Shown here: positions 848 through 53,907 of the stretch, in pieces | Numbering within the stretch: position 1 is the stretch's first letter | Layout of the letters: each line of letters starts with the position of its first letter | Source: Gekko japonicus | Taxonomy: Eukaryota | NCBI RefSeq assembly: GCF_001447785.1 | Contig: NW_015168051.1 | Coordinates: 1,204,877 to 1,268,876 of the forward strand | Reading direction: 5' to 3' | Length of the DNA stretch: 64,000 nucleotides | Position numbers and translations under genes: made by a program | Notes under the pieces: generated by a model | What the model was told of the DNA's origin: nothing | The model's database searches: none | The model's input: the letters and a program-made list of their open reading frames with translations, nothing else

Positions 848-928
848 TTGATCCCTTTCCGAGTTACCAGTTTCTCTGAAGTGAAGTTGAAAACTTGTGA
901 AAAGCGCTTTAACTTAAATTCAGTCATT
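848..928 (-). CDS. MPPE1: MPPE1 coding exon (81 nt)
   Basis: [27 protein letters not shown]; cacag acceptor, gtgagt donor. Confidence 0.9.
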
Positions 929-3900
929 CTGTGTATAAAAATAAAGAGTATGCTGCATTTGACTTCGAATTCATTCTAAGCATCTCAAATATTGGCTGTA
1001 AATGAATGGCTAGCAAATGGCAGATTATTTACATGGTAGTTGAGTGTACTATTTTCCCCAGTAACTTTAGTGAAACATTTCACTGCCATAGGTCAGATGG
1101 GATTAATGAAATACACAGGCTTTTTGTGCTTTACAGCATCTAGGGAACTTCCAGACATATGGATTAGAGTCAAAAGAACTGGAACTGAAGCTCCATTGAT
1201 GGAATGGATCGCTTCTATTTCATCCAATGAAACTCTCTGTGCCATCAGAAAGGCTGTTCCCAAGGATCAGGAGATTCCCAGGAACAATGTAGGATACAGT
1301 TTAAGTCAAAGATCTACAAAAATTGGAATCCCTGTCCATTTGTGCAAGCAGAAACACCTTCCCCTCACAGAAGGGCACCTTTTGATCCAACCTTTGGTTC
1401 TTTTTGCTTTTTCATTCTTCCAATTGTTTATTTGTCCCTAGAGTGCACACAAGACAGGCTATAGCAAATACTTCACCTATGCTGTATTCAGACACCACAA
1501 TAAAACAGCTTGAAAGTATTACAGTTTATAATGTACAGTTTATAATGTAATTCAAATGCAAGTTGTCTTCGAAACTGTGGAAACTGTCTTAGAACCTTGT
1601 TTATACCTTGGATCCTAACAGTCATTTATCTTCTGAATTCAGAAATCCCAGTTTTTTCTCTATCCCCGACTTTCTCAGCCACCCTGACATAGTAGTACAG
1701 CATAGCAGAAAGACACAACACAGACTTGTCATAACTGAGTTGCCTCTGACTTTGGTTCTACAAACAGCCAGCTACCCAAGATGAGATGCTGGAAATTTAA
1801 GGGGCTACATGTGGTGCTGCTCCTTGGGGTGTGGGGGTGCAGGCGAAGCAAAGACGACAGGATACAAGCTTGCAGGAACTGTCTGAAACCTCTCGGCTTC
1901 CCAGCATTTATTTATACACCTTTCTTCCCCCTTCTCCCTCCCTCTCCCTCCGTAAGGGAGTTACAAACATTCGAGCATCCTTTTGGAATGTGTGTGTGTG
2001 TTTTCAGGCAGCTGTCTGCTATCTGCCTCTCCCCCTTTCTCAAGGCTAACTGACTGCGTAGTTAGGCAGTCACCAGACTTCTCTTAGCACACAAATACTT
2101 TCGGGTTACCAATCTCCAGGCAGGAGATTGCACTGCTTTCCCACAGCTACACAGGCAAATACTTTGGCAGGAAAACACAGGAGTCCAAACAGGAGAGTAT
2201 TTTCACAGCTGAGGCAGTAAAACTATCTTTGGCCCCAGTCACACGGGTCGGATATCGCGGGGGGGAGGTGTGGCTGTTTGCCCCAGGGCAAAATAACACG
2301 CTGTTGCGTGATCAGACGTCCCGTGGAGGTTCCGTGGAGGTCCCGTGGGTAGGGGGGAGGTGCCGATCACAGGACAATCCTGCGGCGCGGCAAAGAAGTA
2401 GTGCGGTGCGGCAAACGGGTTGTTTTTTTCTGTACACCAAAGTATGCGCATGCTCCGTTGGGTGCTTGTGCGCATCCATGGAGACTTGGGGGGAAAAAAA
2501 CCTTTTTGCAAGGGGACATGGGCGGGTGCCGGATGCCACCGGAAACGCGATCAGACGCCCGCCCTTGCCCCGCGGTTACCGGAAACTAGTACCTCGGAGG
2601 CACTAGTTTTTTACCCTGCATCTTTGGCGGGAAGCCTCGGGTGAGCCACGGGAGCTCTACGCTTCCCAGATGTGGCGGTGAGATCGCGCCTGGAAAATCC
2701 ACCTATCTTCCGTCTCTCTAGCGTGGCTAATGTTCCGTGTGACCGCAGCCTAAGTACAGCATGATGAAGCAGGAAGCTTCACCCCAGATGCACTCTTGGA
2801 AGCACATCAAGAGATGGATCAGGGCTTCAGTGTTAGGACAATACAGCTCTATTTCCCCACACTAATGTTGCTACTTAATCAAACCTGATTTACTATATAG
2901 TCCTATGTCATCCAGATGGCAGAGATTTTATGATGAAGGAAACAATGATGTTTTGAAAGAAATTACTTTGAAGAACAGTATCTGGGGGAAATTTCCCTAG
3001 GGCCCCAGTGCTCTGTAAAAGAGCAGGGAAAGGGCAGAATGCATGGCTGGTATAATGTTCAGTTTTTCAGAGCAATCTTCTTCCATACAGACGAAGACTT
3101 CACACTTACACTGAAGGTTCTACCTTACAATAAAGGTAGGCTTGAATTGTTACAGAAGGCAGTTATTATTCTAATTCTGACAAGTCCCACCATGGTACTA
3201 TATTGTTTTGCCAAATACTCACTCATAATGAAAGCCAATGTCATGGTTGCCAACAATTACAATCAGCTCAGTGTGGGCTGGATGCCTAAACATCTTTTGA
3301 AAGCGTCGTACATCATCTGACCAAGCCTGCAGGAAAATGCATAAAGCTTCAGTTGCTGAATAATGCTATTTAAAAGGTTCTTCACACCTTTTCATCACTG
3401 TCAGATATTGCTATTTGTCCCAGACTTCTGCTAACTACCACCAACACTCCCGTGCCATAACCTGGTTTAAAACCAGCTACCTACACGGTATTAATATTCC
3501 AACTGGGATTGCCCACTCTATTCATCCCCAAGAAAGAAGTTTCTTGGCACAATCTTAGATAAATTGGGCCCCTGCTCCATATCTGGAAAAGTTATACCTT
3601 TACTTGCAGAAGTGGAGGCAGAGTATTCGTACAAGGTTGCACTTTTTGCCCTAGCAACAAAGAATCAAGTTGACTAAATCTTTGCCTGCTAAGTAGCCAG
3701 GGCTATGTCAAGGTATATAAGGTCCTTACTCCAAACCCTATATCCATTCTGTATGTTTTAGTTCTTTATCTTACATTATTTTAAGAATGTAGCCAGCTTT
3801 ATGCTTGACACATATCTTATATTTTTAATCCCTGTGTTTTATGCAGATTTTATTCTGTATTTTATAGGTTCTATTGTATTGTATTGTATTGTATTGTATT

Positions 3901-5214
3901 TGTAACGGCCATTGGCCATATGCAATAAATTGGAAATTGGAAATATTTCAACTACAATTGTGGACAGCTTTCAGAATGCAGGCACTCTGACCAGCTTTCT
4001 GTGAGAGATGCCCACAGCCCTGATACATTTTAAGATAAGCACATACAAACACACACAGAGTAACGCACAAAGTATCTTGTTTTTCAAATGCAACACTATA
4101 TTATAAAAAATGATCAAGCAGCAATTTCCTTCTTGAGCCATTAACTGTTCTGACAACAACAATGACAAAGAATTCTGTAAGCAAAGGATCATTGCTTAAT
4201 TTCTGAGACAACATGAATGGATGCTTTTCAGCAACTCTGTGCTACTGGATGTTGTATTACTGGTTCAGCTTGTGCCCAGATTACACTACTCAGCATATCC
4301 TAGTTCAATCCACTTTCTCTTGAGCATCAATCTAGATTTAAACACACAAAAGACTCCCACACACTACCTAGTTAAAATGAAATGCCAGGATATATGGCAA
4401 GTACAAGAACAATGGTTTCAAAGTAGTTTTCTTTAACTTGATTATGGATTAAGCTACTGATTCACAAACATGGCCACAAAATGAAGACCACATCAAAGAA
4501 ACGTATTCGTTCCCTGACCCTGTGCTTTTGTGCACAACTAATTCAATAAAACCCTATTTTTTCTTCAAGAATACTTTAGCATTGCACACAATACTGACCT
4601 GAGAAGAGCTCCACTTCCCTTCATCAAAGATGTCACCTAGAATAAAAACAACTTCTGGCTGCAGCAGCCGTAGGGCAGTTTGGAAGGCTCTTTCCATTTG
4701 CCATTCTCTAAGAGAAGAAAAAGAGGTACCAGTCCCAAGACTTTCGAATTAATATCACAAAGAGCTTGTCCGGGCCTGTGTTAAAAGGAAAGAGATATGC
4801 AGATATGCAAAGAACCAGCCTTCCTCCTTGATAAAGTTAGGGAATCGTTTTTGTGTGTGCCTCTCTCTCTTCAACAAGTGTCACAGGGCACAATCCAACC
4901 CCCCTCCCCACAAAAAAATCAGTTACAGTCAGTTCTTACCTCCTTAGCTTATCCAACCAATGTCCTTGGATTTCACCAAGCAAATGAGTATCTGCTAAAA
5001 ACATAGCCTTCAAAACAGACTCTGAAGTCTGTTCAGTGCCTTCTAGAGTCTGAGTTTTCAGTTGTGGCCAGTGACACTGAATTATAACTATGTAATAAAT
5101 TAAAAATTCACAGAAGACAATCACAGGAAGAGTAAAACATAACAGTTTCAGGACAAGTGAGCCTCTTTTCCTCCAAAAGAGCTTGCTCACAATACTGAAG
5201 CGCAGAAATGCCAT
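848..5214 (-). CDS. MPPE1: Metallophosphoesterase 1 (PGAP5), 5' part; coding exons 5214-4940, 4707-4599, 3326-3223, 928-848; gene continues beyond the window start
   Basis: Spliced translation MAFLRFS...FCEFLIYY...[24 protein letters not shown]|[11 protein letters not shown]...[13 protein letters not shown]|[16 protein letters not shown]...[10 protein letters not shown]|MTEFKLKRF...KGIN has the DxH, GDxxD and GNHD metallophosphoesterase motifs and matches vertebrate MPPE1. All introns are GT-AG and phase-compatible. An upstream in-frame ATG lies at 5256. Confidence 0.96.
2231..2750. mobile_element. Non-autonomous DNA transposon (PIF/Harbinger-like MITE)
   Basis: Imperfect TIRs GGCCCCAGTCACACGG ... 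CCGTGTGACCGCAGCC; near-identical copy at 34825; superfamily inferred from TIR style. Confidence 0.7.
3223..3326 (-). CDS. MPPE1: MPPE1 coding exon (104 nt)
   Basis: [35 protein letters not shown]; ctgcag acceptor, gtgagt donor. Confidence 0.95.
3873..3904. repeat. (ATTGT)n microsatellite
   Basis: Direct reading. Confidence 0.9.
4599..4707 (-). CDS. MPPE1: MPPE1 coding exon (109 nt)
   Basis: [36 protein letters not shown]; cttag acceptor, gtcagt donor. Confidence 0.95.
4940..5214 (-). CDS. MPPE1: MPPE1 first coding exon (exon acceptor at 5307)
   Basis: TM segment plus ADTHLLG motif; donor AG|gtaaga at 4940/4939; acceptor tcttgcag at 5308. Confidence 0.95.
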
Positions 5215-6255: not shown

Positions 6256-7452
6256 ACCCCATCAGCAGGGGGACTGCGGCAAGTCGCCCTGTCTCAACTA
6301 CCCACCCCACCATATGGGGGGAAACCGTTACTGTGCAAGTTCCAGCGCTGTATCCCTGTCTGTCCGCAGCGAAACAAACAAAGGTCCTGTAGTACCTTAA
6401 CAGCTTTTGTGCCATCTTCAAGCCCACTTCATCAGACGCAGTTCAGAAAATCCTGTATGGTTTTTCTTCTTATACGCAGAGAGAGGGAAGGGGGTGGGGG
6501 GAGAGAATCGTGCACCTTAGATTTAAAAATTCCTGGACTTTGCACGACTGTTGTGAGCAATGTTCCCCCTAAGCCTAACATTAAATGCGACGTCCAGTGA
6601 GGAGCGAAAGGCTGCGTGTCGTGACGACACAGCGGCAAGACACCAGGAGAGAGGCGGAAGAAGAACTCCACCGGGCAGCTCCCGCGAGCACCGCCGACCC
6701 ATCTCTAGCGCTCACGGGAAGGGGTCGGAGCAACGCGCAGCCGCCGTTTCTCCCCTTGGCCAGCAGCCGCCTGCGCGGGAAAGGCGCAAAGGGGAGGGCC
6801 TGGCTTCTCGGGAGCCGAAGGGAAGCGTCGATGGCGGAAGTCGAGCCCTCCCCAGCGTCCAGCCAGCCAGCCGAAACGCCCCCGCCGGTCCGGCCAGGCC
6901 TCCTTCCAACCCCACCGTGTGACTCACCCAGAAGGAAGAGCAGGCAGCTCCCGGCGGCGGCGGCGGCGCTGGACGCCGAGTCGGCGTCAGGGGGCTGACG
7001 CTTGCCGCCAAGGCCCGCCCCGGCTGAAGCGCTGCCCGGCGGGCTGAGGGAGGGCGCGGGAAGCGGCTGGCCCAGCAGCCCAGAGGCTGCAAGAGGCGCA
7101 GGAAGCGGCAGGTGGCTCGTGGGGGGAGGCTGCCCTCCCCACCACCACCGGGTCACCCGGCGCCCTTGTGCGGGACTGGTCGGTGCGCAGGAGAGGAGGG
7201 GCTGGTTTGGGCGAGGAGCAGGGCCAGGGCGAAGACGTCGGTGTTGGCACCGGGGCGCGGCCAGGGCAAGTGGAGGCCGGTCAGCCAGGCGGGCGACGCG
7301 TGATCAGGGCGCTGCAGTGCTGGGACGGCGCCAGGCCACTTGCAGGAATCTGCCTTTTGGAAAGGCCTGGGAACAAAGTCGCCGAGGAAGGAGGTGAGGA
7401 GGAGGAGGAGGAGAGTGCTGGAAGCCCCGGCGGTGGGCTCGTCCCGGCAGGC

Positions 7453-7823: not shown

Positions 7824-8661
7824 NNNNNNNNNNNNNNNNNNNNNNNNNNNNNNNNNNNNNNNNNNNNNNNNNNNNNNNNNNNNNNNNNNNNNNNNNNNNN
7901 NNNNNNNNNNNNNNNNNNNNNNNNNNNNNNNNNNNNNNNNNNNNNNNNNNNNNNNNNNNNNNNNNNNNNNNNNNNNNNNNNNNNNNNNNNNNNNNNNNNN
8001 NNNNNNNNNNNNNNNNNNNNNNNNNNNNNNNNNNNNNNNNNNNNNNNNNNNNNNNNNNNNNNNNNNNNNNNNNNNNNNNNNNNNNNNNNNNNNNNNNNNN
8101 NNNNNNNNNNNNNNNNNNNNNNNNNNNNNNNNNNNNNNNNNNNNNNNNNNNNNNNNNNNNNNNNNNNNNNNNNNNNNNNNNNNNNNNNNNNNNNNNNNNN
8201 NNNNNNNNNNNNNNNNNNNNNNNNNNNNNNNNNNNNNNNNNNNNNNNNNNNNNNNNNNNNNNNNNNNNNNNNNNNNNNNNNNNNNNNNNNNNNNNNNNNN
8301 NNNNNNNNNNNNNNNNNNNNNNNNNNNNNNNNNNNNNNNNNNNNNNNNNNNNNNNNNNNNNNNNNNNNNNNNNNNNNNNNNNNNNNNNNNNNNNNNNNNN
8401 NNNNNNNNNNNNNNNNNNNNNNNNNNNNNNNNNNNNNNNNNNNNNNNNNNNNNNNNNNNNNNNNNNNNNNNNNNNNNNNNNNNNNNNNNNNNNNNNNNNN
8501 NNNNNNNNNNNNNNNNNNNNNNNNNNNNNNNNNNNNNNNNNNNNNNNNNNNNNNNNNNNNNNNNNNNNNNNNNNNNNNNNNNNNNNNNNNNNNNNNNNNN
8601 NNNNNNNNNNNNNNNNNNNNNNNNNNNNNNNNNNNNNNNNNNNNNNNNNNNNNNNNNNNNN
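7824..8661. other. Assembly gap (838 N)
   Basis: Run of N. Confidence 1.
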
Positions 8662-11810: not shown

Positions 11811-12203
11811 TTGACTGAAAATAAATTTCACTAGAAGTTTTACAGAGAAATCATAGAGGTTTACTTACAATTTAATCCCACCATTCTCCCACGTAAGCAT
11901 GCTAAGGACTGCAGCCTTAGTTACGAATAAAAGGATGCAGGACCAAAGTGTTAATTCAGGCTGTCAATAAAGAGTACTATATTTTTTTTAACGTTCCACT
12001 GCAGGTATTCAACTGAAACAGCCACTGACAGGAATACAAGTTACAGGATACAATTAAAAATAGAGATGATAGGGGCAGAGAAGTACTGCATAAATTATGC
12101 AAAACAATAAAAATGGATTAAATCATGATTTTATTACAAATACAGACCTTTACTCTGAATCGTACTAGATATTAAATGCTATCAGTAATCATGTATGAGT
12201 GTT

Positions 12204-12365
12204 TCATTTCTGTAAACCTCTGTGGTGATTACCACTTGGCAAAATCGATGCAAAAGTAATTCCATATGTTGAACTTAGTTGGTTCAAGCACTTCTCATAC
12301 TGATCATTCAGGTGTAATGATTCTTGAAGAGCATATTTTAAATCTTCTATTTCATCAAAAAAATC
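12204..12365 (-). CDS. Coiled-coil gene, last coding exon
   Basis: DFFDEIEDLKYALQESLHLNDQYEKCLNQLSSTYGITF...QK*; ttttcag acceptor; AATAAA (minus) at 12135-12130. Confidence 0.85.
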   Translation of the reverse strand, partial: DFFDEIEDLKYALQESLHLNDQYEKCLNQLSSTYGITFASILPSGNHHRGLQK

Positions 12366-15300
12366 CTGAAAAGAATGCCAGTACATATCTTTTAATTAAA
12401 TACTACATCCCAATAAAAACATCTAAGATTTTATAAGTTACCACTCAATGTTATTTTTATTATTGGGGGGGATCTAAAAACCAAAAGATTTGCTAAGTAA
12501 AACTGTATAAAGTTTAATTTGGCTCCCATATTACTGTACTTAACTGCTAACTAATTTAGGGTATAATCCTTATCCCATTCTTAATTATGGTAGTTCTCAT
12601 CTAGTACAATACATAGTTGAAAGCGCAGGAAAGCATCACTACCAAATCCTATTTATAGACTTTGTAAAACTGAAAAGACTTCTGTCCCTGCCAAGTGTAC
12701 CTCTGAGGGAATGAAGACTTAATTACAGGAAATACTTTGTTGCTATCTATTTCAGCTGAATATACACAAAGAAATATCGGTCAAAGGAACATTTGCTGTG
12801 TTTCCAAATTAAATCCACTGAATGTGGAACATCTTCACGTACATTCTAATGACAAAGGTATTCATAAGGGGGGGGGGGAGAGAGAGAGACACTGAGTTGG
12901 ATCCAGCCAGCTTTTTCAGTCATTCTCATCTAATTCCTGTCCTTGCTACAGGCCCTGTCCCACACGCTTTTTGTCCCGTGATCCCTAACATAGCCTTTTT
13001 GGTGGTCAAAGGGGGTCCCCCTCCTTCCTTTCCACCAGCACAAAAGCCTTAAACCTAAAAGATGAACACTTCCAGCAAAGAGTCCTTGACTGACAGTTCC
13101 ATAAAGAGGTCATCACAGGTTGCCCGTTGTGAATGCAACAGAAAGGTATATACATGGACTTGCTGTGCATGCAGAACCCTCTCCAGCAGATTGCCAGCAC
13201 GCCCAGTTCTGAGCACCTTTTGAGGAGGGGGGACATAACTAAATAATCTCACCACCACCACCAGAGAGGAACTATTTTAGTCCTCACACACCACAGATAC
13301 TTGGAAAGTACAGGTTCAAACCAAGGCTCTGGATATACAAGAGAATCTAATTATCATAGCAGAATTAGTCATATGTAGCTGACACACCTAAGTCATGGCC
13401 TTAACTTGCAAACAAGTTACCTTGTCTAATGCAGCAAGTTCATTTCTCAGCATTCTTCTCTCTCTAGATAGCTTTTCATTTTCCTTCTTCAGTTGCTGGA
13501 TCTCCAAAAGCAACTGGTCTGCAATTTAAATATATCTTCAAAATCAAGAGCTCACTAAAAAGCATAATCATGATACAACATAATTTTCACATTATATTTA
13601 AAGGCAAGATTGAAGTTGCTTTTTTCTTATAAAATTCTCTCCAGAGAAAGCCTTGCTAGTATGAAGCCCTCCTAGCTGGAAACCTGCACAGATGCTGTTT
13701 AGCCACGTACAGTTTTGTTGGCTCCTCATGACCTGATTCTGCTGAAAAAAGCACCTCATAGGATCAGCTGTGAAGACTGCTACACTGGTAGGAAATTACA
13801 GCTGTAGGAAAGGGCCATATAAAAGCCATGGAAAACCTTGAGCTGCAAATACAGATCACACGCAGCACATGGATTACAGGGTGTGACGACCTCTTATCTG
13901 GGAAGGTCTAGTTTTACTTTAAAAGTTCTTATGGTTTATTTTTCTTTGGGTATTCTGGCTGCCACCAGGAATTTTTAATAAATTCCAATTCTTCTCTTTG
14001 CTTCTGGGCTTGGTATTGTAGCACGGGGTCTAGGCCTTTCGAGGAACTATGTGGTCTGAGGAAGGATTCTTTACTTAGCTGGTAAACTTGAAGTAAATAG
14101 GATTTATTTAAAGAAAACATAAATACGAGGGTAAACAATGTAAACAGTACTGGGAAGGATTTGAACAAATGCTTGGTGTCTCTCACAAGCTTCTCCTTTA
14201 CTGACAGGGAGGTTAAAGCAACCTTGTAACACTTTTCACTGTACTCTTCTTAGACTCTCAGCTTTCAATTGTAACTCTTATAACACAGAACTTAACCGTC
14301 TGCTTAACACAGAGACTTTTACTCTTATATTTCACACAGGAACTTCTCACACAGAGACCTCAGGACAAAACTCATATCAACTGCTTTTACACAGCACACT
14401 CTGCTGACTGACTGTTTCAACACAGAACTAAACAACCCATACAGGGAAGCTTCTTCTTATAACTGTTTTTCTCAACTGTCATACCTAACAGACACACCAG
14501 ATAGACATTCCAATCATCCACACAGCATCCATTCCAAAACCCCTCCCCCTCTCTGTCACTCACCAATCATATCCCTTGCTTGTCCAGCACTCTAGATTCC
14601 TCACACAGCTATGCCAACCAAACTTTTTAAACACACACACACAGTAAAACATGGAATCGTTACACAGGGGTACAAAGTACATCAGGGAAGTGGGAAGGAG
14701 ACAGTGTTATGTGGCAAGTGGAGCTGAGATGTACAGCTCTGGTCCACTTGTGAAGCACAGAAGGTTGGCTTTAGCCGCCACAGTGCGAACCTCCATCTGC
14801 AGTAGCTAAAGGCAATTTATAGTATCAAGTTGCCAGTGGAATACAGTGCCATGTACAGTTCTCCACTTATGCCTCCTACTCAGTCACATATAAGTGTACA
14901 CATGCTAAGAAATTGAATAAAAATAAATATGAGTAGCTATTCAGACAGTACCCAGCCAATTAAACCAAACAACGTTTTCCTTCGGAAGAACAGAGGCAGT
15001 ACAGGAATCCATGTCTACCCCAGAATCTGTTCACTGAAGCCAGTCTGCTGCTGGAAAACAGCCAGGGGAGGGAGAGAAAGAGCCACTGCAAAGGTTGACG
15101 AGGGAGAGACAAAGCACAGGACAGCAGCACAAGGGGAAAGGAGCAACCAGAGGAGAAGTCTGGAAGGTCAGCACTGAGAGCCAGTGTAGGATAGTGAACA
15201 AGAGTGTGGAACTGGTATCTGGGAGACTCGGGTTTCAGTCTCCACTGGTGCCATGGAAGCCCACTGGGTCAATGATACTCTCTCAGCCTAACCTATCACA

Positions 15301-18300
15301 CAGGGTTGTTGTGAGGATAAAATGGAGAGGAGAACGATGTCAGCCACTTTGGGTCCCCATTGGGGAGAGAGGCAAGGTACAAATGAAGTAAATGTGAAGG
15401 CTTTAAAAAAAAAAAAGGGAAATTACAAAAACAACACTGCCCTGGGGCTTTTAAAGAAATGTTCCCAAAAGAAAAACCGGAAATGTTGGGAAGCTCTGAA
15501 AAAGCACCTACAAAATACCAATCTTTAGAATTAATGAAATGCTTTCTGAGACATGTAACTCATTCAGAATGTGTCGTATGAAGATTTTGATGCAGCACAA
15601 ACCTAACAGCATTCGATAATTATATTTCCTGTGTATATAGACAAATGCCCACAGATGTTCTCTGTGCGACTGAACAACAACAACAATTTTATCCACAATT
15701 AACCTGCTATAATATGATAAAACAGTTAAGTGTCTTCAATGTTAGACTTGATATCCAAATATGATGCTAGTTCTATAATTGTGACTGTATGAGTTTCTCA
15801 AATAACAAACTCTATTTTGCTTACAACAAAAGTTGTATTTTGTTTTCAATTTCTCTTTTGTCTTGCTAAGTTTACACAGGATACAGTAGTTTGCAGCAGT
15901 CTCTCTCTCATGTATTAGATATATTCACAATTTTGCATGTACAAAATAAAGACATTTATACTTCTAAATACCATAAATATACTAAATAGTACTATTTTTT
16001 ATTCCAAGTTACAAATTATGTATTTTATGCTGTTAAATTAAGTAGTAGTGGTGGTGGTGGTACTAAATTTCAAAATCTATTAATTCAACACTTCTGGAAT
16101 TTTTATGTCTCCTCTTGAACAAAGGAAAAGATTGGAACAAATTGGAAGTTTGGAATAGAATCCAAAGCGCAAGATCAAGCGTGGAAGGGAGTATGCATTC
16201 AGTGTGGTAGAAAGCACTTCTTTGTATCTGCAGGGGTGATGGTTTGGGAGAGATGCAATGGTTCTTCTAAGTGACTCCTCCTGTGTATTATAGAGTTATA
16301 ACTGCATGCCCAGGATTGCTATACTGGACTTTTTTGTTGGATTTTGGATGTTCCAATAAAAAGGTTTTAAATTGCTCTTGTTTTTGGATTTTTCCCTATG
16401 AATCAACATAAAGGAAAATTTACAAGATGTAATTCTGATGCCCATAAAAACAGTTCTTGGACTTAGGGTTAGTCCAGAAGAAAAGCATACAAGAGACATG
16501 AGGACATTTGTTTGGAACTTGCCACATGGTCTGGTTTAGTAAATTTTTAAAAGAAGAAGAAGAAGAACAGCTCCCTCTTCTTCGTCCAGGGTGGGTCTAA
16601 ACATCTATATCAAGTCTTAATTCCAGAGGCTTTTTTTGTTCTATGTCTGGTAACCTCAAGCTAATGTAAGAATCACAGATTCAGGGTACAGTCTCTTTCA
16701 AGTCACAAAGATAAAGGCCCCATAAGGAAAATTCCATTCCATTCTGGAACTCAGAGCAACCCCCTATTTCCAGAGTTATGGTGCTTTGCAAGTCTATTTA
16801 CAGACAGACAAGGCATCTACAACAACCCAACAACAAAAAGCATCAGGGGATCCCATATTCTTACCTAAATATCTGCAGGAACAGCCCCCCTTCTTTTTGC
16901 ACACACATTTGTGAGATAATGTCTTTCTCCGTGCTGCAGTACCTGGAGCAGTTTTGCCCCCTTGTGTACCCTTTTTGCTTTCTAACTCCTTTCTCTTTTG
17001 GCTTGCCAACTGAAGTTGTTGTTCTAGCTCATTAATTTTAACCTGTGGTAAAACAATAGGACATATTTAATACATGAGAAAATGCATACCACCTCAAGCA
17101 TACATAGAAATATACTTGGTGAATTAATTCCGGGTGAAGTCTTTATCTGTATTAGTGGTAGGCAACAAAAAAACAAAAGAAGAGAATCCCCTCTAGATCA
17201 AAATATGCAAAGCTCAGATAGAGAAAAGGATTTTAAAAAAACAACCCAACCTTTCTACATGTCATGTATTTCATGATACCCAGCTTGTATTTTTTTCTCA
17301 AAACACCAATCCCATGACCTACTGCAAAAGTAAATATAGAATAAATCCAGAGTTAAACACTTTGGGGCAGGCTGGGTTTACATTGCAAAGCTGGTGACAG
17401 ACAGGGCAATGCCAATAAACTGTCCAGAAGGAATGCAGGAATACGTTCAGCCCCAATCCAGCAATGGCACTGCATGCATAGCCACAGATGCAGGATCTTT
17501 TTCCCCATACAGGATCTTAAGCATTCATGGAACAGATCCAAAAGAGGATCTGTTTGGAGAAGTCTGCTTCTGTAAACAGTTGCTTTTGCTATTGTTAATT
17601 CTATTTCAACCCTACCCTTCCCAAGGACAAATAGAGAGTAACTATCATCTCCCTTCTCACTTCTTCTGCATTGGGTAGGGGGTTGGACTAGATGGTCTGT
17701 ATAGCCCCTTCCAACTCTGATTCTATGACTCATGAAAGCTCATACCCTACCACAAGTTTTGTCAGTCTTTAAGGTGCTACTGGAGTCTTATTCTTTTCTA
17801 CTGCTACAGGCAGACTAACACAGCTACCCATCTTATTTATTTATTTATTTAGATTTCAAACCACCCTCCCCCGCCAAGGCAGGGCTCAAGGCGGTGTAAA
17901 AGGTTAAGGTAAAGGTTTCCCTTGCTCAAAAGCCAGTTGAATCCAAGCCCAAGAGCCAGCGCTGTCTGAAGACATTTCTGTGGTCATGTGACTGGCATGA
18001 TTAAACACCAAGGTGCACGGAACACTGTTACCTTCCCATCGAAGCAGTACCTATTTATCTACTTGCAATTTCTTGCTTTCAAACTGCTGCACAACATAAT
18101 AAATTCATAATCCATAGTTAAAACAGTTTAAAAACAATAAAAGACACAGTAATTAACCTTAAGATGCCACTGCCTCATGGGGAAGCAGGGAGTGGGAGTG
18201 CCAGAAGGATGTCTTGATCTATCTTGATCTATCATCTCCCTTGTAGGGCTGACTTGATAACTTCCTTGCCCCCTAGCTCTCTGTATATTGAGACTTTTAA

Positions 18301-21300
18301 GCCTACTGTCACGGAATTAGGGCCTGGGTTGAGCCTCAGTCCTCTGTGAAACTTATGATACTTTAGTTTTCATTGGCATTAGCCTCTACAGTTGAATCTT
18401 TGGCTCTGTTTCCCAGGAGGCTTCAGGACTCTGCCAAGTCCTATGGCCTTCTGGTACCAATAACTCTGTACATGACTTTTGCCTTAGAGGATGTTTATAC
18501 ATTCCAGAAGTTAGTGGTCTCACTATCAGAATCTAGATGGAGAAGGTATTTGAATCTAGCTTCCTTGACTCTCCTTGTGAGCTTCCTGGCCCCAAAGTGA
18601 GAAAGAAGGAGAGTGATTATGCCTTGCCTTGCGTAAGGTGTTGCTGTAGCTATGCCAACATAAGCAGCTACATGCTAAGCATCACACTTGATGGTCCCAT
18701 TTCTGTCAGGAGTACACAATATAGATATAAGTTGCTGCAAACTCGAGAACTCCTGAAACATGCTGATTTTGTTTTTTGCTTGTAAAATAAGAAAGAAATT
18801 AGCTCATCAAGGACTAAGTACGCTCACTGACCTCCAGCAGCCACAGAAAGCTGAGGACACATGACGACACAGGAAAAAGAAAGGGAAGGGGGGCCCTGGC
18901 CACTCCTCCACTTTCACTTGGCTGGATGGCCTTGGGCAAGCCATAGCTCTGATAAGAGCTGTTCTTGAAAAAGAGCAGTCTCTGTCAGAGCTCTCTCAGC
19001 CCCACCTACCTCACAGGGTGTCTGTTGTGGGGAGGGGAAGGGAAAGGAGTTTGTAAGCCGCTCTGAGACTCCTTCGGGTAGTGAAGGGCGGGGTATAAAT
19101 CCAATCTCTTCTTCTTCTCTTCTTCAATTGCAGTGGGGGGGGGGAGGTTAAGGTACAGACCATGAGGCAAGCATCTCCTAATCCCTGCCTCCTGAGTCCA
19201 GGATGCCGTAAACTTCTCAAATGAGTCAAAGCCTAGTACGAGTTGGGGGAAGAAGAGTTACCAGGACCAGAGGAAAAAGACTTCTTTGGAACCTGGCCAG
19301 CTGACCTCCAAGAGGACTTCTTCCATCTATGAAGGGAGCAGAGCTCCCTAACAATCTTTATGTATCCTTGAAGGGGGTGACATAAATCTTACGGAAAGCA
19401 GTGAAACTGTTTCCTTTTGTTCTTGATGTATCTTCATTTCGTTATTATGCCTTCTCTGCAGATTATTGTACATCTGACGCAATCTGGAAAACAAAATATG
19501 CAAAAATAAGAGGAAATCACAGACATTTCAAGCACACACACACAAACATACATAAAACGAAACCACCTATGCAAACCCCACTGAAAGTGCATGGGCGAGG
19601 TTTTGATTGACGACCTTTAAAAGTTGTTGTTTGGGTTCCTTTTTTTTATAAAGAAAAAAGTGAAATAGAGGATGTGTATGATAAGACTCATGCAGGGACA
19701 GAGGGAGTGGCTTGGGAGGACAAATGTAGTAGAATAACAGGAAGACCCAGAGGAGCCTCAACAAGAGGCAGCAGCAGGCCCCAAACTGCCCTTGACATGC
19801 CAGCACTGGCCGCGTTTTCAGGTGAAGTTGAGCTCAGAGATTATGGAGATGACAGGATTACAGCCTTGACAGGTATATACACAGAGGCAGCAACCCTGTT
19901 AATTGGTTGGCGCCTGCTCCTGCAGGAGACAGAGAAAAAAGGACAGTCAAGACAGAGAAACAGGAGGAAGACAGACAGAACAGGTCACCATGCCTAATTC
20001 TGCAGACGTAACAAGGGCTGCAGGAGCTGCGGTGGCTCAAGTAGTTAAGACACTGAACTGCAGGCTGTGGAAGGTCAGTAGTTCAATAAACACAAATACT
20101 GCGTACAGATAACCAAAATTGTAAGAATCAGTTGACTCTTGTAGGTGACTTCAAACAGTTTTAATCTTTCTGTTTTCCAACAAAAGACGCCATCAATGTT
20201 CTAAGGCGACGTCAAGACAACGGAGACACAGATGAACTTCCCCGGAGTTTTACCGCTCATTTCGATATGCTCTTTCTCAAAGCAACGGTTCAATTCTGCA
20301 TCCTTACAATATCTGATACCGGAATTTCTCCAATTCCACGAAACTTCAAGAGCTCTTGACTATATTACTTCTACATACGGACCGTATGTAAGGATGCAGA
20401 ATTGATGGCGTCTTTTGTTGGAAAACAGAAAGATTAAAACTGTTTGAAGTCACCTACAAGAGTCAACTGATTCTTACAATTTTGGTTATCTGTACGCACT
20501 GTTTGCAGTATTTGTGTTTATTGTACCTCAGTTATACTGCTGCACCCCCCTTTTTCTCTTCTGTCGAAGGTCAGTAGTTCAGCAGTTCGAGACCCGAATT
20601 GCCGCATGACGGAGTGAGCTCCCGTCTCTAGTTCCAGCTCCCGCCAACCTAGCAGTTTGAAAGCAAGAAATTGCAAGTAGATAAATAGGTACCACTTTGG
20701 TGGGAAGGTAACAGCGTTCCGTGCACCTTGGTGTTTAGTCATGCCGGCCACACGACCACGGAAACGTCTTCGGACAGCGCTGGCTCTTCGGCTTCGAAAC
20801 GGAGATGAGCACCGCAACCCTAGAGTTGGACTCGACTGGCTTTCGAGCAAGGGAACCTTTAACTTTACTTTAACAAGGGCTGCAGGAGTAGAGGGACCTC
20901 AAACTCCTCCACTGAAGCCCCAAGCAGACAGTCTTGACACAGGAACCTGGGGACTCACACTTGTAGAATGGCCTACATACTGAATGCAAGACTGTACCTC
21001 TGCTTTACTAGAGTAAGAAAAAGCCATAAACAATTTGCTGTACACAGAGATAAACTAGGGAAGACCAGCATCAAAAGGAGAAAATCTCAGAAGAGATTTA
21101 GGCCGTTTCCACCAGGACATTTTACTCTGCCTTGGCTTCCTTACAGAAGTATGGTTTTTGGGAGCACCCACAAGTCATTGTCCTGTTTTCATCTTGTCTC
21201 TGTGTTTTGCTGCAATCTGTGTTTTGCTTTGCTGCAATCTTTCCCAAATATAGTTCGGTATGGTCTTTTTAAAAAGATCATCACAGCCAAAGCACCTTCG

Positions 21301-24300
21301 GATGCTGTGTGGAAAGGAAAGTGTGCATTTTTAAGGCCCTACCTGTATTGACACAACTTTCCTTGCACCAGCACATGCAGCCATTCCAACCAAAACCACA
21401 TGGCTTTTTTTTAAAAAATCAGCAATTGCTAGATCTCTTTAGTGTTATACTGTTGATGTACTGCCACAATCTCCTCTTTCCCAGGAACTCTTTCACCCTT
21501 TTCACTGCAGAACTATAAAGGTTCGGGCTGCACATTCCTCCTTATCACTCCACAATGAAAAGGCTAGACTTAATTTTTTAATGTGAAAGCTGGGAATGAG
21601 TAGATCATGGCAATAAATTGTTATAACATTGTAAAGCTATAGAGATCTAGCAATTCCTCATTTCAAAAAATCTTATGACACAAGAAAACTGTGATTAAAA
21701 GTGCTGTGTGGATGTGGGTGCTCTGTTGTGACTGTGAATGCCTCTCCAGCAGCAGCAGCAGCAAGAGCTACACAAAGAAGTACCTCTGTCAAGAAGTAGC
21801 ACCACATTAGAAAAATGGGGAGCTTTAACATCTGACAATACAGATGCAACTTTGCTTAGGATTGCACTGTTAGACTATCATTGTGTTCTTGCATATATAA
21901 GAGTATAGCTCACTGAATACAGATTGACTTTCAAATAAGTAACAAACATATTGTCCTTGAAAAAGCTTACTTGGCATTTTCCTTTGCTACTTCATGTAGC
22001 CTGGAACGAACTCTATCACTTTTACTCCATACATGAATTTCTGTTTGAACTTGCACACTAAATCAAATAAACACAGTGACTTAATAATGTAATTCTTTCA
22101 ACAAAAGCTATACATTTGTTTACTGAACCTTTTAATCTTAACATTTGCAACTGGAGTTACACTGTTAAAGGTTCATCAAAATACAATTCCATTCACTACT
22201 TTATTATCTAAACTTGGTATTTTTGTAGTTCTGTTCTGAGAGAAACCTTAATTAGAACAGCAATATTGCTACTATACAATATGACATCACTATTTTGCAG
22301 AGTTCCATGGGCCCCAAGTTGAACAGGGCCCATAACATTTTGTAGCCCGGTTTTTCTTGCGGCAGTCCTGTGATTAGCTATAAAGATTCATTTACAGAAA
22401 TCATTATGGCTTTAAGATAAGCCTACTTCACACCTGATTATGAAATGCTAAATATAAATCTCACAAAAACTGAAACATGTCCAGATTACAAATTGCTGTA
22501 TGTTCTGATCCCATATACTCATCTAAATTCTCCAAGACATAAGGAGTTAACAATCTGTACAAGTGTTAAACATCCACAAATCAAGACTCAGTGAAACAAT
22601 GAACTCATGCTTCCTTTCTTCCCCCCCCCCCCCCAAAAAAAAGAGTGCAAATTGGCTCTTGGTTTAAGCTTAAATACATCAATTTGTCAGTAATGCTAAG
22701 TCAGCTTGGATCCAGTGGCTGCTTAGATGGGATGCTAATGAGGCTGTTGACCCCATGGCACTCAGAACGACAGCCAGAGTGAGAGCCCTGGCTGGAAATT
22801 TAGACAGCCGAGTCACTGCCAATCTCCATTTCTTACTTTCTTTTTGCCACACAAACAGGCAGGAACTTATTTTGGGCGCGCAGCTGCTCTTGCGTCTGTG
22901 TCAAGTCATGTTCCAACTGCTTGTTTTTTAGGCGTACGTGCCTCAGCTTCTTATGCAGCAGTTCATTTTCCTGATTAAGCTGAAGAAGTGAGAGGAGGGG
23001 AAAACAAATCTAGGTTAGGGTTATCTGACACAACTGAAGACTCTCACCACATCTGTTTCCATTCTTGAAAGAAGTTCTTGCTTTAATGAAAAGCCTTTTA
23101 CAAAGCCTAACCTGTGCATACCAACCTCATATGATTTTTCACATTTTATACTGCACAAAACGAGGGGTTTTATGAAGTACGTCTCCTACAATATTCTATT
23201 TGTCTAAAACACCAAAGGCATCCTTTCTCTAACCGCCATACATTAGAGAATCATGCTAGAGGTGCCTGTCTACCAAATTGCTTACTAAAGCAGAGGAGCA
23301 TGCTTCAGGTCATCCCCTCTTAATTCCTCTGCTTGATTTCTACACACCCATCAGCTCCCTTTGTCATTTGCCTTTCGTTGTTTGTTACTCATTCTTCCTC
23401 TTCAAAGAACTTTTCAAAACCCAGTTTTTTCATTCAAGAAATCACCTAAATCACAACAGTCACCTCTATGTTCACTTCTAAAGCTACTTCCTTACTTCAT
23501 CATACTGTTATAAGTCTACCTGGCCACACCATCCACTCCTTCCTCATCTAATGCAGATTGTAAACATTGTAAGGTGCATTGCATTTATATATTCTTCTAA
23601 AGCTTTACACACTACCGTGTTAAATCAGCACTTCTCAAACTTTAAGAAAACAAGCACCCCCTTCAAACTCACTAGACAGTACAACTGTTAGCTACTCTGT
23701 GTCATTTTTTTCTCTAACTATCCAGCTTCTCCACACACCTGGTTAGCATTTCTTCCCTGCTCACTACAGACCCTCATCCTAGAACATTTCAGTCCATCTG
23801 AGGTGACTGGACCTTTACAAGTCAGGAACTTGTAATCACACCACCTTCATTTCAGGAATCACTATGGAATCATGACACATGCTTTGGGGGACCCTGTGCA
23901 GTGGCCTTACCAATAAGGGACACAAAATTATTTCCATCCACATACATATACAAGTGTCCTCTAGCCCCCAGCTGGAAGAACACTGCATTTTAAAAGTATT
24001 AAAGAAATATGCCCCTGTATTGCCAGGGAACTCTTGTCTTTACTTGAAGAAAAAGGTCCTATCCATCATATTCACATAAAGACTATGATAGTATAGTGGC
24101 TGATAACATTTATTTTGGAATGGCCCATAGGAGGTTGAGATTTAAACATTGTCCCATGACAGTCAGTCACTGTCACCTATCTTTTAGCACCAGGGTTGTT
24201 GTAAGTCTAACAATCCATTGAAGTCAGTAGGCTTACAAGGATGCAAGTCCACTTACCCAGAGCAGCAAGTTTACTCAGAGATATGTTCCGCTGTATTAAG

Positions 24301-26012
24301 AGTAGCTTACTCTCAAATAAGTATGCACAGAATTGCACTGTAACAGTTACTTCCCTTATTTCAATAAGCACAGCATGAAACAACTATGGATAGTGTTGTG
24401 GTTAGAGTGTTGCACTATGGGAGACCCAGGCTTGAATCCCCACTCTCGTAGAAGCTCACTGGGTGACCATGGGCTAATCCTACAGCTAAATCTTCCTCAC
24501 AGGGTTTTTGTGAGGATAAAATGGAGGAGAGGAGAATGATGTAAGCTGATCTGGGTCTCCATGGAGTGAAAGGCAGGGTACAAGTAAGCAATGCTCCCCC
24601 TAAGCTGTGGAGTCTTGTGAGCAAAAATTCTACTTTGTGAGCTACTGGAATTAAAGTTGTGAGCAAGCAATTTGGCTACTGCATAAATTACGTTTGTTCT
24701 GGAGCCAGAGACTAAAAAACTGTGAGCTAGCTCACACTAACTCAGTTTAGAGGGGACACTGCAAGTAAGTAAAGAAATTGGGTTGCCCTCCAAATGAGAC
24801 CATTTTGCAATGCTTTGTTTACTAGCAAGTGCACAGAAAGCACTGTATGGATCTTACTTTAGTTCATTCTCTGGTAGGCAATAGGTAGATTTAAAGACAC
24901 CTAGAACTGAATACACAAGTGGACAATGATACAATGTCCACTTACAATTAGGCACAATACTTATGTACTTTTAACACCTAAGCATAACATTCAGCACAGG
25001 AACCACTTTTCCCATGAAAAAATGAAGCTGTCATATACTGAATCCATTGGTTCTTCCAGGACACTATTATCTATTTAGACTGACAGTGGCTTTCGAGAAT
25101 GGCAGCAGAGGCATTTCACATCACTTATTTACTCGATCCTTTTAACTGAGAATGCCCGGGGGACTCAACCAGGCACCTTCTGCATGCAGATGCTCTACCA
25201 AAGCCATGGTCCCACCAGCATGGCCGTCGTCGGGAGGGGCTGCTGTATACTGTGAACATTCAGCCAGTTAAAGGAGCATAAGCTCTCAGGTGATCCCTCT
25301 CCCCCGTTGTGTTTCTGAAATGTATATGCGGCAGTCTACACGTGGAGAGATGCTCTTGGGCACTCTGGCGGGGGGAGGGAGCTGTTTCTTAAGAGTCCTG
25401 GAGCCGCCACGCTGACCAAGCAAAGCAAAAGATTCCCTCGCCTGCCACCGGCTTGAACCAAGGCCAGATGCTTCTGGGCGGACCGGGGGAGAAGGGGGCG
25501 CTTGGGGCTCCCCTCCCGTCCAGAGAGCCACCTCCAGCCACTCACTTCAAAGCACCTGTGAATGGAAGGCAGAGTCATCCGCCCCCGGCTTCCCGCTTCC
25601 CACATAAAGCAGAAACCGGCCTCGAAGGAGAGCAGGGCAGGGCCGAAGCCCCCCCTCCAGCCTCTCCACAGCCAATAAAAGCACACGATACGCGGTGCGC
25701 GCGAAAAGAGGGGGGGGGGTTCCGTCTGCAGCACAGAGGCCCTATCTCCAATGGATAGAAGGACAGGCGACGATGTAGCGAAAGGTCCCATATACGGGTA
25801 GCCTTTACAAGCGCCTGTCTGGGCTCATTTGATGTAAATGTCGCATGGGGAATAGGAAGGTTTAATGATAATCAGAAACGGAGATACTACTCGGGGGAAA
25901 GGATTATGTTCTGTCTAAGGAATACTTCCAAAGGGAAAAAAAGTTTACCTTCGCACAGGCAATCACAAAGTACGACTAACACGGAAGCGATTGGCTTTCT
26001 TTTCGATGTCAT
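12204..26012 (-). CDS. Uncharacterised coiled-coil protein with a CEP290-like C-terminus; exons 26012-25949 (tentative), 24900-24858 (tentative), 23150-23048, 22979-22837, 22057-21971, 19483-19393, 17042-16865, 13518-13421, 12365-12204
   Basis: All junctions are GT-AG with matching phases, giving a 969-nt open frame (322 aa). Heptad-rich sequence. C-terminal ELAALDKDFFDEIEDLKY resembles CEP290 ELENFDPSFFEEIEDLKY (recalled, not searched). Alternative starts at 23119 or 23062. Confidence 0.8.
13421..13518 (-). CDS. Coiled-coil gene exon (98 nt)
   Basis: DQLLLEIQQLKKENEKLSRERRMLRNELAALDK; ttgcag / gtaact. Confidence 0.85.
13882..14664 (-). mobile_element. Solo LTR (783 bp)
   Basis: TGTGACGA...TCGTTACA termini; 5-bp TSD caggg; AATAAA on minus strand. 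Confidence 0.8.
15178..15392 (+). mobile_element. tRNA-derived SINE (Squam3/MIR-like); relatives at 18905-19125, 24385-24585 and 47696-47870
   Basis: GAGCCAGTGTAGGATAGTG head; shared CTCAGCC..ACCT.CACAGGGTTGTTGTGAGGATAAAATGG core. Confidence 0.65.
16865..17042 (-). CDS. Coiled-coil gene exon (178 nt)
   Basis: VKINELEQQLQLASQKRKELESKKG...CVCKKKGGCSCRYL; ccacag / gtaaga. Confidence 0.82.
17665..17729 (+). mobile_element. CR1 LINE 3' end
   Basis: GGGGGTTGGACTAGATG...CCCTTCCAACTCTGATTCTATGA terminal motif; another CR1-like piece at about 50075-50200. Confidence 0.7.
17897..18088 (-). mobile_element. Sauria SINE, 3' fragment
   Basis: Matches the 3' half of the other copies. Confidence 0.8.
19393..19483 (-). 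CDS. Coiled-coil gene exon (91 nt)
   Basis: LRQMYNNLQRRHNNEMKIHQEQKETVSLLS; ttccag / gtaaga. Confidence 0.82.
20023..20870 (+). mobile_element. Sauria SINE interrupted by a ~480-bp fold-back insertion (20086-20565)
   Basis: SINE TSD taacaagggctgcaggag (20009-20026 / 20871-20888); inner TSD gaaggtcagtagttca (20070-20085 / 20566-20581). Confidence 0.9.
21971..22057 (-). CDS. Coiled-coil gene exon (87 nt)
   Basis: VQVQTEIHVWSKSDRVRSRLHEVAKENAK; atttag / gtaagc. Confidence 0.78.
22837..22979 (-). CDS. Coiled-coil gene exon (143 nt)
   Basis: LNQENELLHKKLRHVRLKNKQLEHDLTQTQEQLRAQNKFLPVCVAKR; long pyrimidine tract with cttcag / gtaaga. Confidence 0.8.
23048..23150 (-). CDS. Coiled-coil gene exon (103 nt; contains ATGs at 23119 and 23062)
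   Basis: IKCEKSYEVGMHRLGFVKGFSLKQELLSRMETDV; gtgcag / gtgaga; followed by a 68-nt intron with a CCCTAAC branch point. Confidence 0.65.
24589..24761 (-). mobile_element. hAT-type MITE inserted in a SINE tail
   Basis: Same family; 8-bp TSD caagtaag. Confidence 0.85.
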
Positions 26013-26100
26013 TAGAACTAAGTGAGATCATCAGTGTGCGGCGACTGTTTCAGGTCCCCCCAGGCTTCTTGCTAAAGGGTTCCCATGGGAACAGGCTACT
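25400..26100 (-). promoter_or_regulatory. CpG-rich promoter region of the coiled-coil gene, with palindromic RFX X-box GTTCCCATGGGAAC (26079-26092)
   Basis: CpG enrichment, CCAAT boxes, minus-strand donors at 25949 and 25546, and a 14-bp palindrome fitting GTTNCCATGGNAAC. Confidence 0.55.
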
Positions 26101-53695: not shown

Positions 53696-53907
53696 NNNNN
53701 NNNNNNNNNNNNNNNNNNNNNNNNNNNNNNNNNNNNNNNNNNNNNNNNNNNNNNNNNNNNNNNNNNNNNNNNNNNNNNNNNNNNNNNNNNNNNNNNNNNN
53801 NNNNNNNNNNNNNNNNNNNNNNNNNNNNNNNNNNNNNNNNNNNNNNNNNNNNNNNNNNNNNNNNNNNNNNNNNNNNNNNNNNNNNNNNNNNNNNNNNNNN
53901 NNNNNNN
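53696..53907. other. Assembly gap (212 N) inside a GC-rich inverted-repeat element starting at about 53233
   Basis: Run of N after poly-G; 53350-53455 is approximately the reverse complement of 53560-53665. Confidence 0.95.

Follow-up and report, generated by a model that had tools for sequence, protein, structure and literature searches.

What is the gene that lies between MPPE1-like and inositol-monophosphatase-type (IMPA-type) exons in the gecko Gekko japonicus, and what might its product do? The window examined here is a stretch of 64,000 nucleotides (nt) of contig NW_015168051.1 (assembly GCF_001447785.1). An earlier note on its letters had described in it a hidden minus-strand gene for a coiled-coil protein, a "mini-CEP290" kept in reptiles and lost in mammals. 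A protein-coding gene is indeed present at this site, with MPPE1-like and IMPA-type exons flanking it. This gene is very probably the gecko copy of an old, conserved and unstudied animal family. A fairer wording for the protein is a member of a pan-animal small coiled-coil family that is not seen in mammals or teleosts here and that shares at most a short C-terminal module with CEP290.

Identity of the gene and its animal family

Searches were carried out with single exons first and then with the identical database protein. The seven exon translations are consecutive stretches of the RefSeq protein XP_015269859.1 (P0089), with zero differences. Because every exon is identical to this protein, the gene is already annotated in RefSeq for Gekko japonicus, and the gene model itself is neither new nor hidden. 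The gecko entry belongs to a small "CEP290-like" family of RefSeq LOC genes with products of approximately 250-270 amino acids (aa). The seven coding exons occupy minus-strand positions 25605-12204, and all of the introns are of the GT-AG type, as established by direct reading of the splice sites and by tblastn with family proteins. The exons and the signal that follows them are listed below.

25546..25718, minus strand: exon 1, 5' untranslated region and first 20 codons (RefSeq ATG at 25605, conserved Met at 25578, donor GTGAGT)
22837..22979, minus strand: exon 2, 143 nt, first coiled-coil helix (donor GTAAGA; P0089 residues 21-67)
21971..22057, minus strand: exon 3, 87 nt, linker motif RNVQVQTE (present in RNA contigs; P0089 residues 69-96)
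19393..19483, minus strand: exon 4, 91 nt (acceptor ttttccag, donor GTAAGA; P0089 residues 98-127)
16865..17042, minus strand: exon 5, 178 nt, end of helix 2, basic linker and Cys cluster HKCVCKKKGGCSC (acceptor accacag, donor GTAAGA; P0089 residues 128-186, no differences)
13421..13518, minus strand: exon 6, 98 nt, start of helix 3 (acceptor aattgcag, donor GTAACT; P0089 residues 188-219)
12204..12365, minus strand: coding part of exon 7, 53 codons and TGA, FFDEIEDLKYALQES...YG module (P0089 residues 220-272)
12130..12135, minus strand: putative AATAAA polyadenylation signal, 68 nt past the stop, read from the sequence

The open frame of 819 nt, including the stop, contains 272 codons, or 263 aa when counted from the conserved Met. 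The junction phases of the six introns are 0/2/2/0/1/0, and the three split codons encode N, K and D. Exons 2-7 agree with the earlier note in position, GT-AG sites and matching phases, as does its polyadenylation signal approximately 70 nt after the stop, and the peptide stretches that it quoted are found in the minus-strand stop-to-stop frames between 12 and 26 kilobases (kb). Its first exon was misplaced, the coding part of the actual one being 25605-25546, and the frame of up to 322 aa that it had assembled is replaced by 272 aa in the exon-by-exon match. For exons 2 and 5, homologues and RNA favour the longer forms with GTAAGA donors, and the shorter alternatives (donors GTTCCT and GTACAC) were set aside.

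How widely is this protein distributed? A phmmer search with the 53-residue exon 7 against 1.84 billion representative proteins yields 56 relatives at E <= 0.001, mostly 200-340 aa in length and with the match located at the extreme C-terminal end. The Pogona protein retrieves 51 family members, and a 12-sequence profile retrieves 171 matches at E <= 0.001, the best 120 of which were inspected by name. Every exon is matched when family proteins are compared with the window by tblastn. The sauropsids among the matches listed are squamates, turtles, crocodilians and many birds, and the other vertebrates are caecilians, lungfish, coelacanth, sturgeons, paddlefish, bichirs, sharks and rays. Invertebrate members on the list come from amphioxus, a hemichordate, the annelid Capitella, the flatworm Macrostomum and Nematostella. 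Mammals, teleosts, frogs and salamanders are missing from the matches listed (the best 120 of 171), which is an absence from a list and not proof of loss. The family thus extends from cnidarians to birds and is not a speciality of reptiles. The proposal that it was kept in reptiles and lost in mammals agrees with the list as far as mammals are concerned and fails in its other half, given that the gene was kept far beyond reptiles.

The NCBI pipeline names the family "CEP290-like" in dozens of species, and the other names in use are "uncharacterized" or generic coiled-coil names (myosin-11-like, paramyosin-like). None of the names is taken from a named human orthologue, which fits the absence of a human counterpart. 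The stand-alone length of approximately 240-280 aa is kept in invertebrates, and the family-wide features are an N-terminal MxxPx(I/V)HxC, a linker RDxQVQTE and a C-terminal FFxEIEDLKYALQES. In the gecko protein, the first motif reads MTLPSIHRC (exon 1) and the second, which spans exons 2/3, reads RNVQVQTE. Conservation peaks in the C-terminal module, where the mean majority-residue share is 0.74, and in the QT motif of the linker. The gecko module, read in the exon 7 translation, fits LDxxFFxEIEDLKYALQESxxLNxxYEK...YG, and the invariant columns (E213, D218, F221, E224, E226, D227, K229, A231, N239 and Y242) are all present. The earlier note is supported in this respect: the product carries the conserved FFxEIEDLKY module, which is the reason for the automatic name "CEP290-like".

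Transcript, first exon and neighbouring genes

Is the gene transcribed and spliced as modelled? A search of sequencing runs gives ten small contig sets that contain the 3' exon, as well as three raw RNA-seq runs with the same species label. Four runs were placed on positions 20101-26100, the interval to which the mapped RNA evidence applies. Contigs X1 (1,336 nt, depth 34.6) and X5 (496 nt, depth 33.7) originate from two different studies, and each of them joins 25546-25702 (X1) or 25546-25718 (X5) to 22837-22979 and 21971-22057. The RNA joints connect exactly 25546 to 22979 and 22837 to 22057, and exons 1-2 and 2-3 are thus spliced as modelled. On the plus strand, the skipped intervals begin and end with CT..AC, which corresponds to GT..AG on the minus strand. 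Each of the two joints also occurs in one raw read of run X20 and in one of run X21, from a third study, and the spliced gene that had been predicted is in this respect confirmed. The joints from 3-4 to 6-7 are modelled from splice sites and from colinearity with the database protein. The length of contig X1 suggests that some transcripts extend beyond the AATAAA.

Exon 1 was first located via homologues, whose N-termini align to it, and was afterwards borne out by the two RNA contigs; its translation equals residues 1-20 of P0089. The contigs reach 25702 and 25718, and in none of the four runs does RNA map to 25901-26100, which puts the start of transcription at approximately 25.7 kb, inside a CpG-rich promoter. 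The tentative 5' exons that the earlier note had placed near 26.09 kb fall within 25901-26100 and find no support in these runs. Its exon and start at 23062-23048 ("METDV") participate in no joint of any RNA contig or read in the four runs, and no homologue carries a counterpart.

Several side observations concern the same region. Two inverted CCAAT boxes (ATTGG) are located within 25670-25760 on the minus strand, on either side of the point in the CpG-rich region of the first exon where transcription is inferred to start. Such an inverted CCAAT arrangement is common in NF-Y-driven promoters. The models of Gekko kuhli (355 aa) and Heteronotia (360 aa) carry N-terminal extensions that align to 25606-25872 (minus strand), upstream of the ATG. 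In the window, the frame of this extension region is interrupted by a stop codon, and the longer models are probably over-extended. Two interspersed-repeat copies in the introns, at 20501-20900 and 24501-24900, reach an RNA depth of more than 1,000 reads per bin in X20 and a contig word depth of more than 100,000; variant letters are numerous there, and false joints link the copies. The RNA signal at these two places is noise from repeat copies elsewhere and not from the gene.

The short exon sizes could have been taken for chance open frames or a decayed pseudogene, and they are the only feature that speaks for such an explanation. It can be dismissed with near certainty, as it is refuted by spliced RNA, deep conservation and 100% identity to the RefSeq protein, and an intact frame and canonical splice sites argue against it as well. 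The gene shares its strand with a neighbour. Exons of Metallophos type (MPPE1-like) occupy minus-strand positions 4706-4605, 3323-3222 and 939-850, and their identity to the phosphoesterase part of P0008 is as high as 85%; 7218-7442 is listed together with these calcineurin-like metallophosphoesterase exons. The coiled-coil gene is located directly upstream of this MPPE1-like gene. P0008 is a 283-aa fusion model that combines family exons with a Metallophos domain and whose family part matches P0111 of Acipenser ruthenus. In addition, two bird models named "metallophosphoesterase 1 isoform X3/X4" include the entire family sequence. Because sturgeon-type and bird models fuse both genes, the linkage of the family gene to MPPE1 appears to be old.

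The same fusion models raise the question of whether the exons constitute an independent gene at all, or rather alternative upstream exons of MPPE1 read-through transcripts, particularly as the Metallophos exons of P0008 match the window at 850-4706. This explanation is highly improbable. The gene possesses its own stop codon with AATAAA 68 nt beyond it, stand-alone proteins of 240-280 aa are kept in invertebrates, and the C-terminal module could not be conserved in its present form unless the protein ended with it. An independent family gene adjacent to MPPE1 is the preferred reading. On its other flank, plus-strand positions 37858-38112 and 42531-42911 contain inositol-monophosphatase signatures (DPVDGT and WDLAAATVIIREAGG) and match Pfam Inositol_P at 2e-10 and 1e-20; judged by these signatures, the flanking gene is IMPA-type. 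It is presumably IMPA2 rather than IMPA1, given the adjacency of MPPE1 and IMPA2 in human 18p11. Runs of N at 7824-8661 and 53696-53907 are assembly gaps or masked sequence.

Predicted rod and linker motif

What shape does the family protein adopt? An AlphaFold2 monomer model, based on a 51-sequence alignment with the identical database protein at its head, has a mean pLDDT (predicted local distance difference test) of 78.9 and consists of three helices (residues 15-59, 83-153 and 183-253; pLDDT mostly >90) that are separated by two disordered linkers (60-82 and 154-182). The two-copy model scores 0.38, compared with 0.00 for the best of three controls, where the score is a measure of model confidence, its calibration is mostly microbial and passes by eukaryotic proteins may reflect memory. 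Of the proteins in this calibration, 21 of the 30 whose structures were solved as one-chain pairs attain the dimer mark, compared with none of 23 solved as single chains. The two-copy runs show a contact agreement of at least 60% and a partner pLDDT of at least 61. The dimer contacts are same-residue pairs with 3-4 (a/d) spacing along all three helices, and because of this pattern the product is predicted to be a three-segment, parallel, in-register homodimeric coiled coil.

The C-terminal module forms the end of helix 3 in the dimer model, with F221, I225, L228, L232, L236, N239, Y242, L246, L249 and Y253 in the core. A core Asn sets the register and two-strandedness in leucine zippers such as GCN4. 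The outward-facing invariant residues E224, E226, D227, K229 and E243 may provide a partner surface. Linker 2 is basic, and its Cys cluster HKCVCKKKGGCSC is found in sauropsids and is not conserved beyond them.

Linker 1 contains a near-invariant pattern, (T)(T/S)-R-(D/N)-x-Q-(V/I/T)-Q-T-(E/D), in which Q and T are each present in 48 of the 51 family sequences. LC8 recognises TQT-type anchors in which position -4 is polar, and weak anchors are aided by adjacent coiled coils (PMC6607443). The linker 1 motif has the form of a candidate LC8/DYNLL anchor: Q occupies position 0 and T position +1, position -4 is polar, and the setting is predicted to be disordered. Like LC8 clients that carry a TQT anchor beside a coiled coil, such as myosin Va (PMC6607443), the family has its Q-T in a linker that is predicted to be disordered between parallel dimeric helices, with D/N at position -4 and E/D at position +2.

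CEP290, the C-terminal module and a possible role

How is the gecko protein related to CEP290? CEP290, or NPHP6, is a ciliary transition-zone protein of approximately 2,480 aa and is encoded by the most often mutated ciliopathy gene. The CEP290 end as quoted in the earlier note would share a ten-residue core, FFxEIEDLKY, with the gecko C-terminus, together with scattered matches over approximately 35 residues. According to this string and the NCBI naming, a coiled coil, the FFxEIEDLKY core and then approximately 30 loosely similar residues would be common to both proteins. The Cep290 C-terminus is placed on the axoneme through Cep162, and a mammalian C-terminal fragment self-associates (PMC10914257), as the gecko protein is predicted to do. 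However, at 272 aa the gecko protein is only one ninth of the size of CEP290, and the other conserved family motifs have no known counterpart in CEP290. As to the CEP290 Pfam coiled-coil region, no Pfam family is at or near threshold in the gecko protein.

At E <= 0.001, no vertebrate protein of CEP290 size is among the matches of the exon 7 phmmer search of 1.84 billion proteins, and the label "mini-CEP290" is in this light overstated. Because vertebrate CEP290 was not returned, any likeness to it must be short. A likeness of this size would score too low to surface in a library this large and is consistent with the "CEP290-like" names and the search blank alike.

The largest exon 7 match and the sole giant is a 2,551-aa protein of Clavelina lepadiformis (P0006), which lacks the CEP290 Pfam region. 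This protein contains a module of approximately 75 residues three times, in repeats of approximately 270 residues, with a pairwise E = 2e-9 against a shark member. Its region 2250-2551, used as a query, finds only Clavelina paralogues and no CEP290 relative. The giant coiled-coil paralogues of this species (P0006 and P0184-P0187) range from 1,720 to 2,710 aa. The giants of LOC143446922 (2,105-2,710 aa) share this module with the family, in their case as a coiled coil followed by F-N-E-V-D-D-L-R-Y...K-L-N...Y-G-V-P, but it stands in triplicate inside a large repetitive protein and the remainder is unrelated. Because the same module occurs three times in otherwise unrelated giants, it looks like a separable unit and not like a mark of CEP290 descent.

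These comparisons bear on the original idea that the gene is a mini-CEP290 paralogue, kept in reptiles and lost in mammals, that shares or competes for the C-terminal partners of CEP290 at the transition zone. Its attractions are that in dozens of species the NCBI pipeline derives the family's name from CEP290, that the C-terminal module is the best conserved part, that no mammal appears among the best 120 of 171 matches and that the C-terminal fragment of CEP290 self-associates and binds through Cep162 (PMC10914257). Nevertheless, we regard it as unlikely. The family is eumetazoan and not reptilian, vertebrate CEP290 is missing from the exon 7 matches at E <= 0.001, and the shared part covers at most approximately 40-75 of the 272 residues. 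Moreover, no counterpart in CEP290 has been claimed for the N-terminal motif, the QT motif or helix 2, and the triplicate module of the unrelated Clavelina giants behaves as a separate module. The gene is better described as a member of its own small coiled-coil family, in which any CEP290 likeness is confined to the C-terminal end.

What could such a rod do? One more element upstream of the gene has a bearing on this question.

26079..26092, strand unassigned: palindrome GTTCCCATGGGAAC, possible RFX X-box, uncertain, approximately 360 nt upstream of the RNA 5' ends

The perfect palindrome GTTCCCATGGGAAC fits the nematode-derived consensus GTHNYYATRRNAAC, which has three matches in the window on both strands compared with 0.35 expected. 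It does not fit the strict X-box consensus GTNRCCNNRGYAAC, for which the window contains no match. The combination of a CEP290-type end, an LC8-type motif and a single X-box-like palindrome leads us to propose, tentatively, a role at the centrosome or cilium. The rod would serve the centrosome or the base of the cilium as a small adaptor or scaffold, an LC8/DYNLL dimer would clamp it at linker 1 through the R-D-x-Q-V-Q-T-E motif, and its C-terminal module would bind a partner of the type used by the corresponding end of CEP290. Taken jointly, these three steps form a possible but doubtful model. A bolder version appears improbable: an ancient centriole or transition-zone adaptor, spread from cnidarians to birds, would form an LC8-clamped dimer and use the CEP290-shared module to dock on a CEP162-like partner or on CEP290 itself, and would have been lost independently in mammals and teleosts.

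A number of points weigh against a conserved dimeric scaffold with this location. Pfam assigns no family to the single exons or the family proteins and gives only sub-threshold coiled-coil matches, a profile search of the PDB finds no solved relative, and the literature on any family member consists of incidental gene-list mentions or unrelated prefixes, with no experiment. Expression in the raw runs X20 and X21 is very low, and the junction reads are single. Unlike in typical LC8 clients, position -1 of the linker 1 motif is V or I in most family members, and the canonical TQT occurs in a few. The failure of CEP290 to appear in the exon 7 search and the qualified nature of the dimer score count on the same side. 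Finally, the gene is apparently absent from mammals and teleosts, which have normal cilia, and its product would thus not be a core ciliary part.

Given that mammals and teleosts appear to have lost the gene, a role as an adaptor outside cilia is no less likely than one at the centrosome or cilium. The protein may be a generic dimeric coiled-coil adaptor that functions outside cilia and centrosomes, for example in vesicle tethering or as a nuclear or cytoskeletal scaffold, and the FFxEIEDLKY likeness to CEP290 would then be a short shared or convergent helix-capping motif. We consider this quite plausible, although short of probable. The sub-threshold Pfam matches include TMF, Rab11-FIP3-like and LRIM1, and the ESM Atlas, which holds no structure for the gecko protein, offers generic coiled-coil look-alikes from RabGAP1-like, Spindly and CCDC13 clusters. 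The apparent absence of the gene from animals with normal cilia (among the matches listed) and the lack of CEP290 among the exon 7 phmmer matches agree with such a role. On the other hand, the strict conservation of motifs across animal evolution speaks for a defined set of partners, centrosomes are a common place for LC8-type motifs and for CEP290-type ends alike, and a possible X-box is located near the promoter.

With either role, the gecko gene is best regarded as one copy of a conserved animal family. If the C-terminal module truly corresponds to the CEP290 end, this small protein would be a handy natural probe of what the CEP290 C-terminus binds, which is a lead and not a result. The wider interest lies in the family, which has RefSeq orthologues in well over a hundred species: an entire family is without a Pfam entry, a solved structure or a paper, and yet its motifs are near-invariant from sea anemone to gecko.

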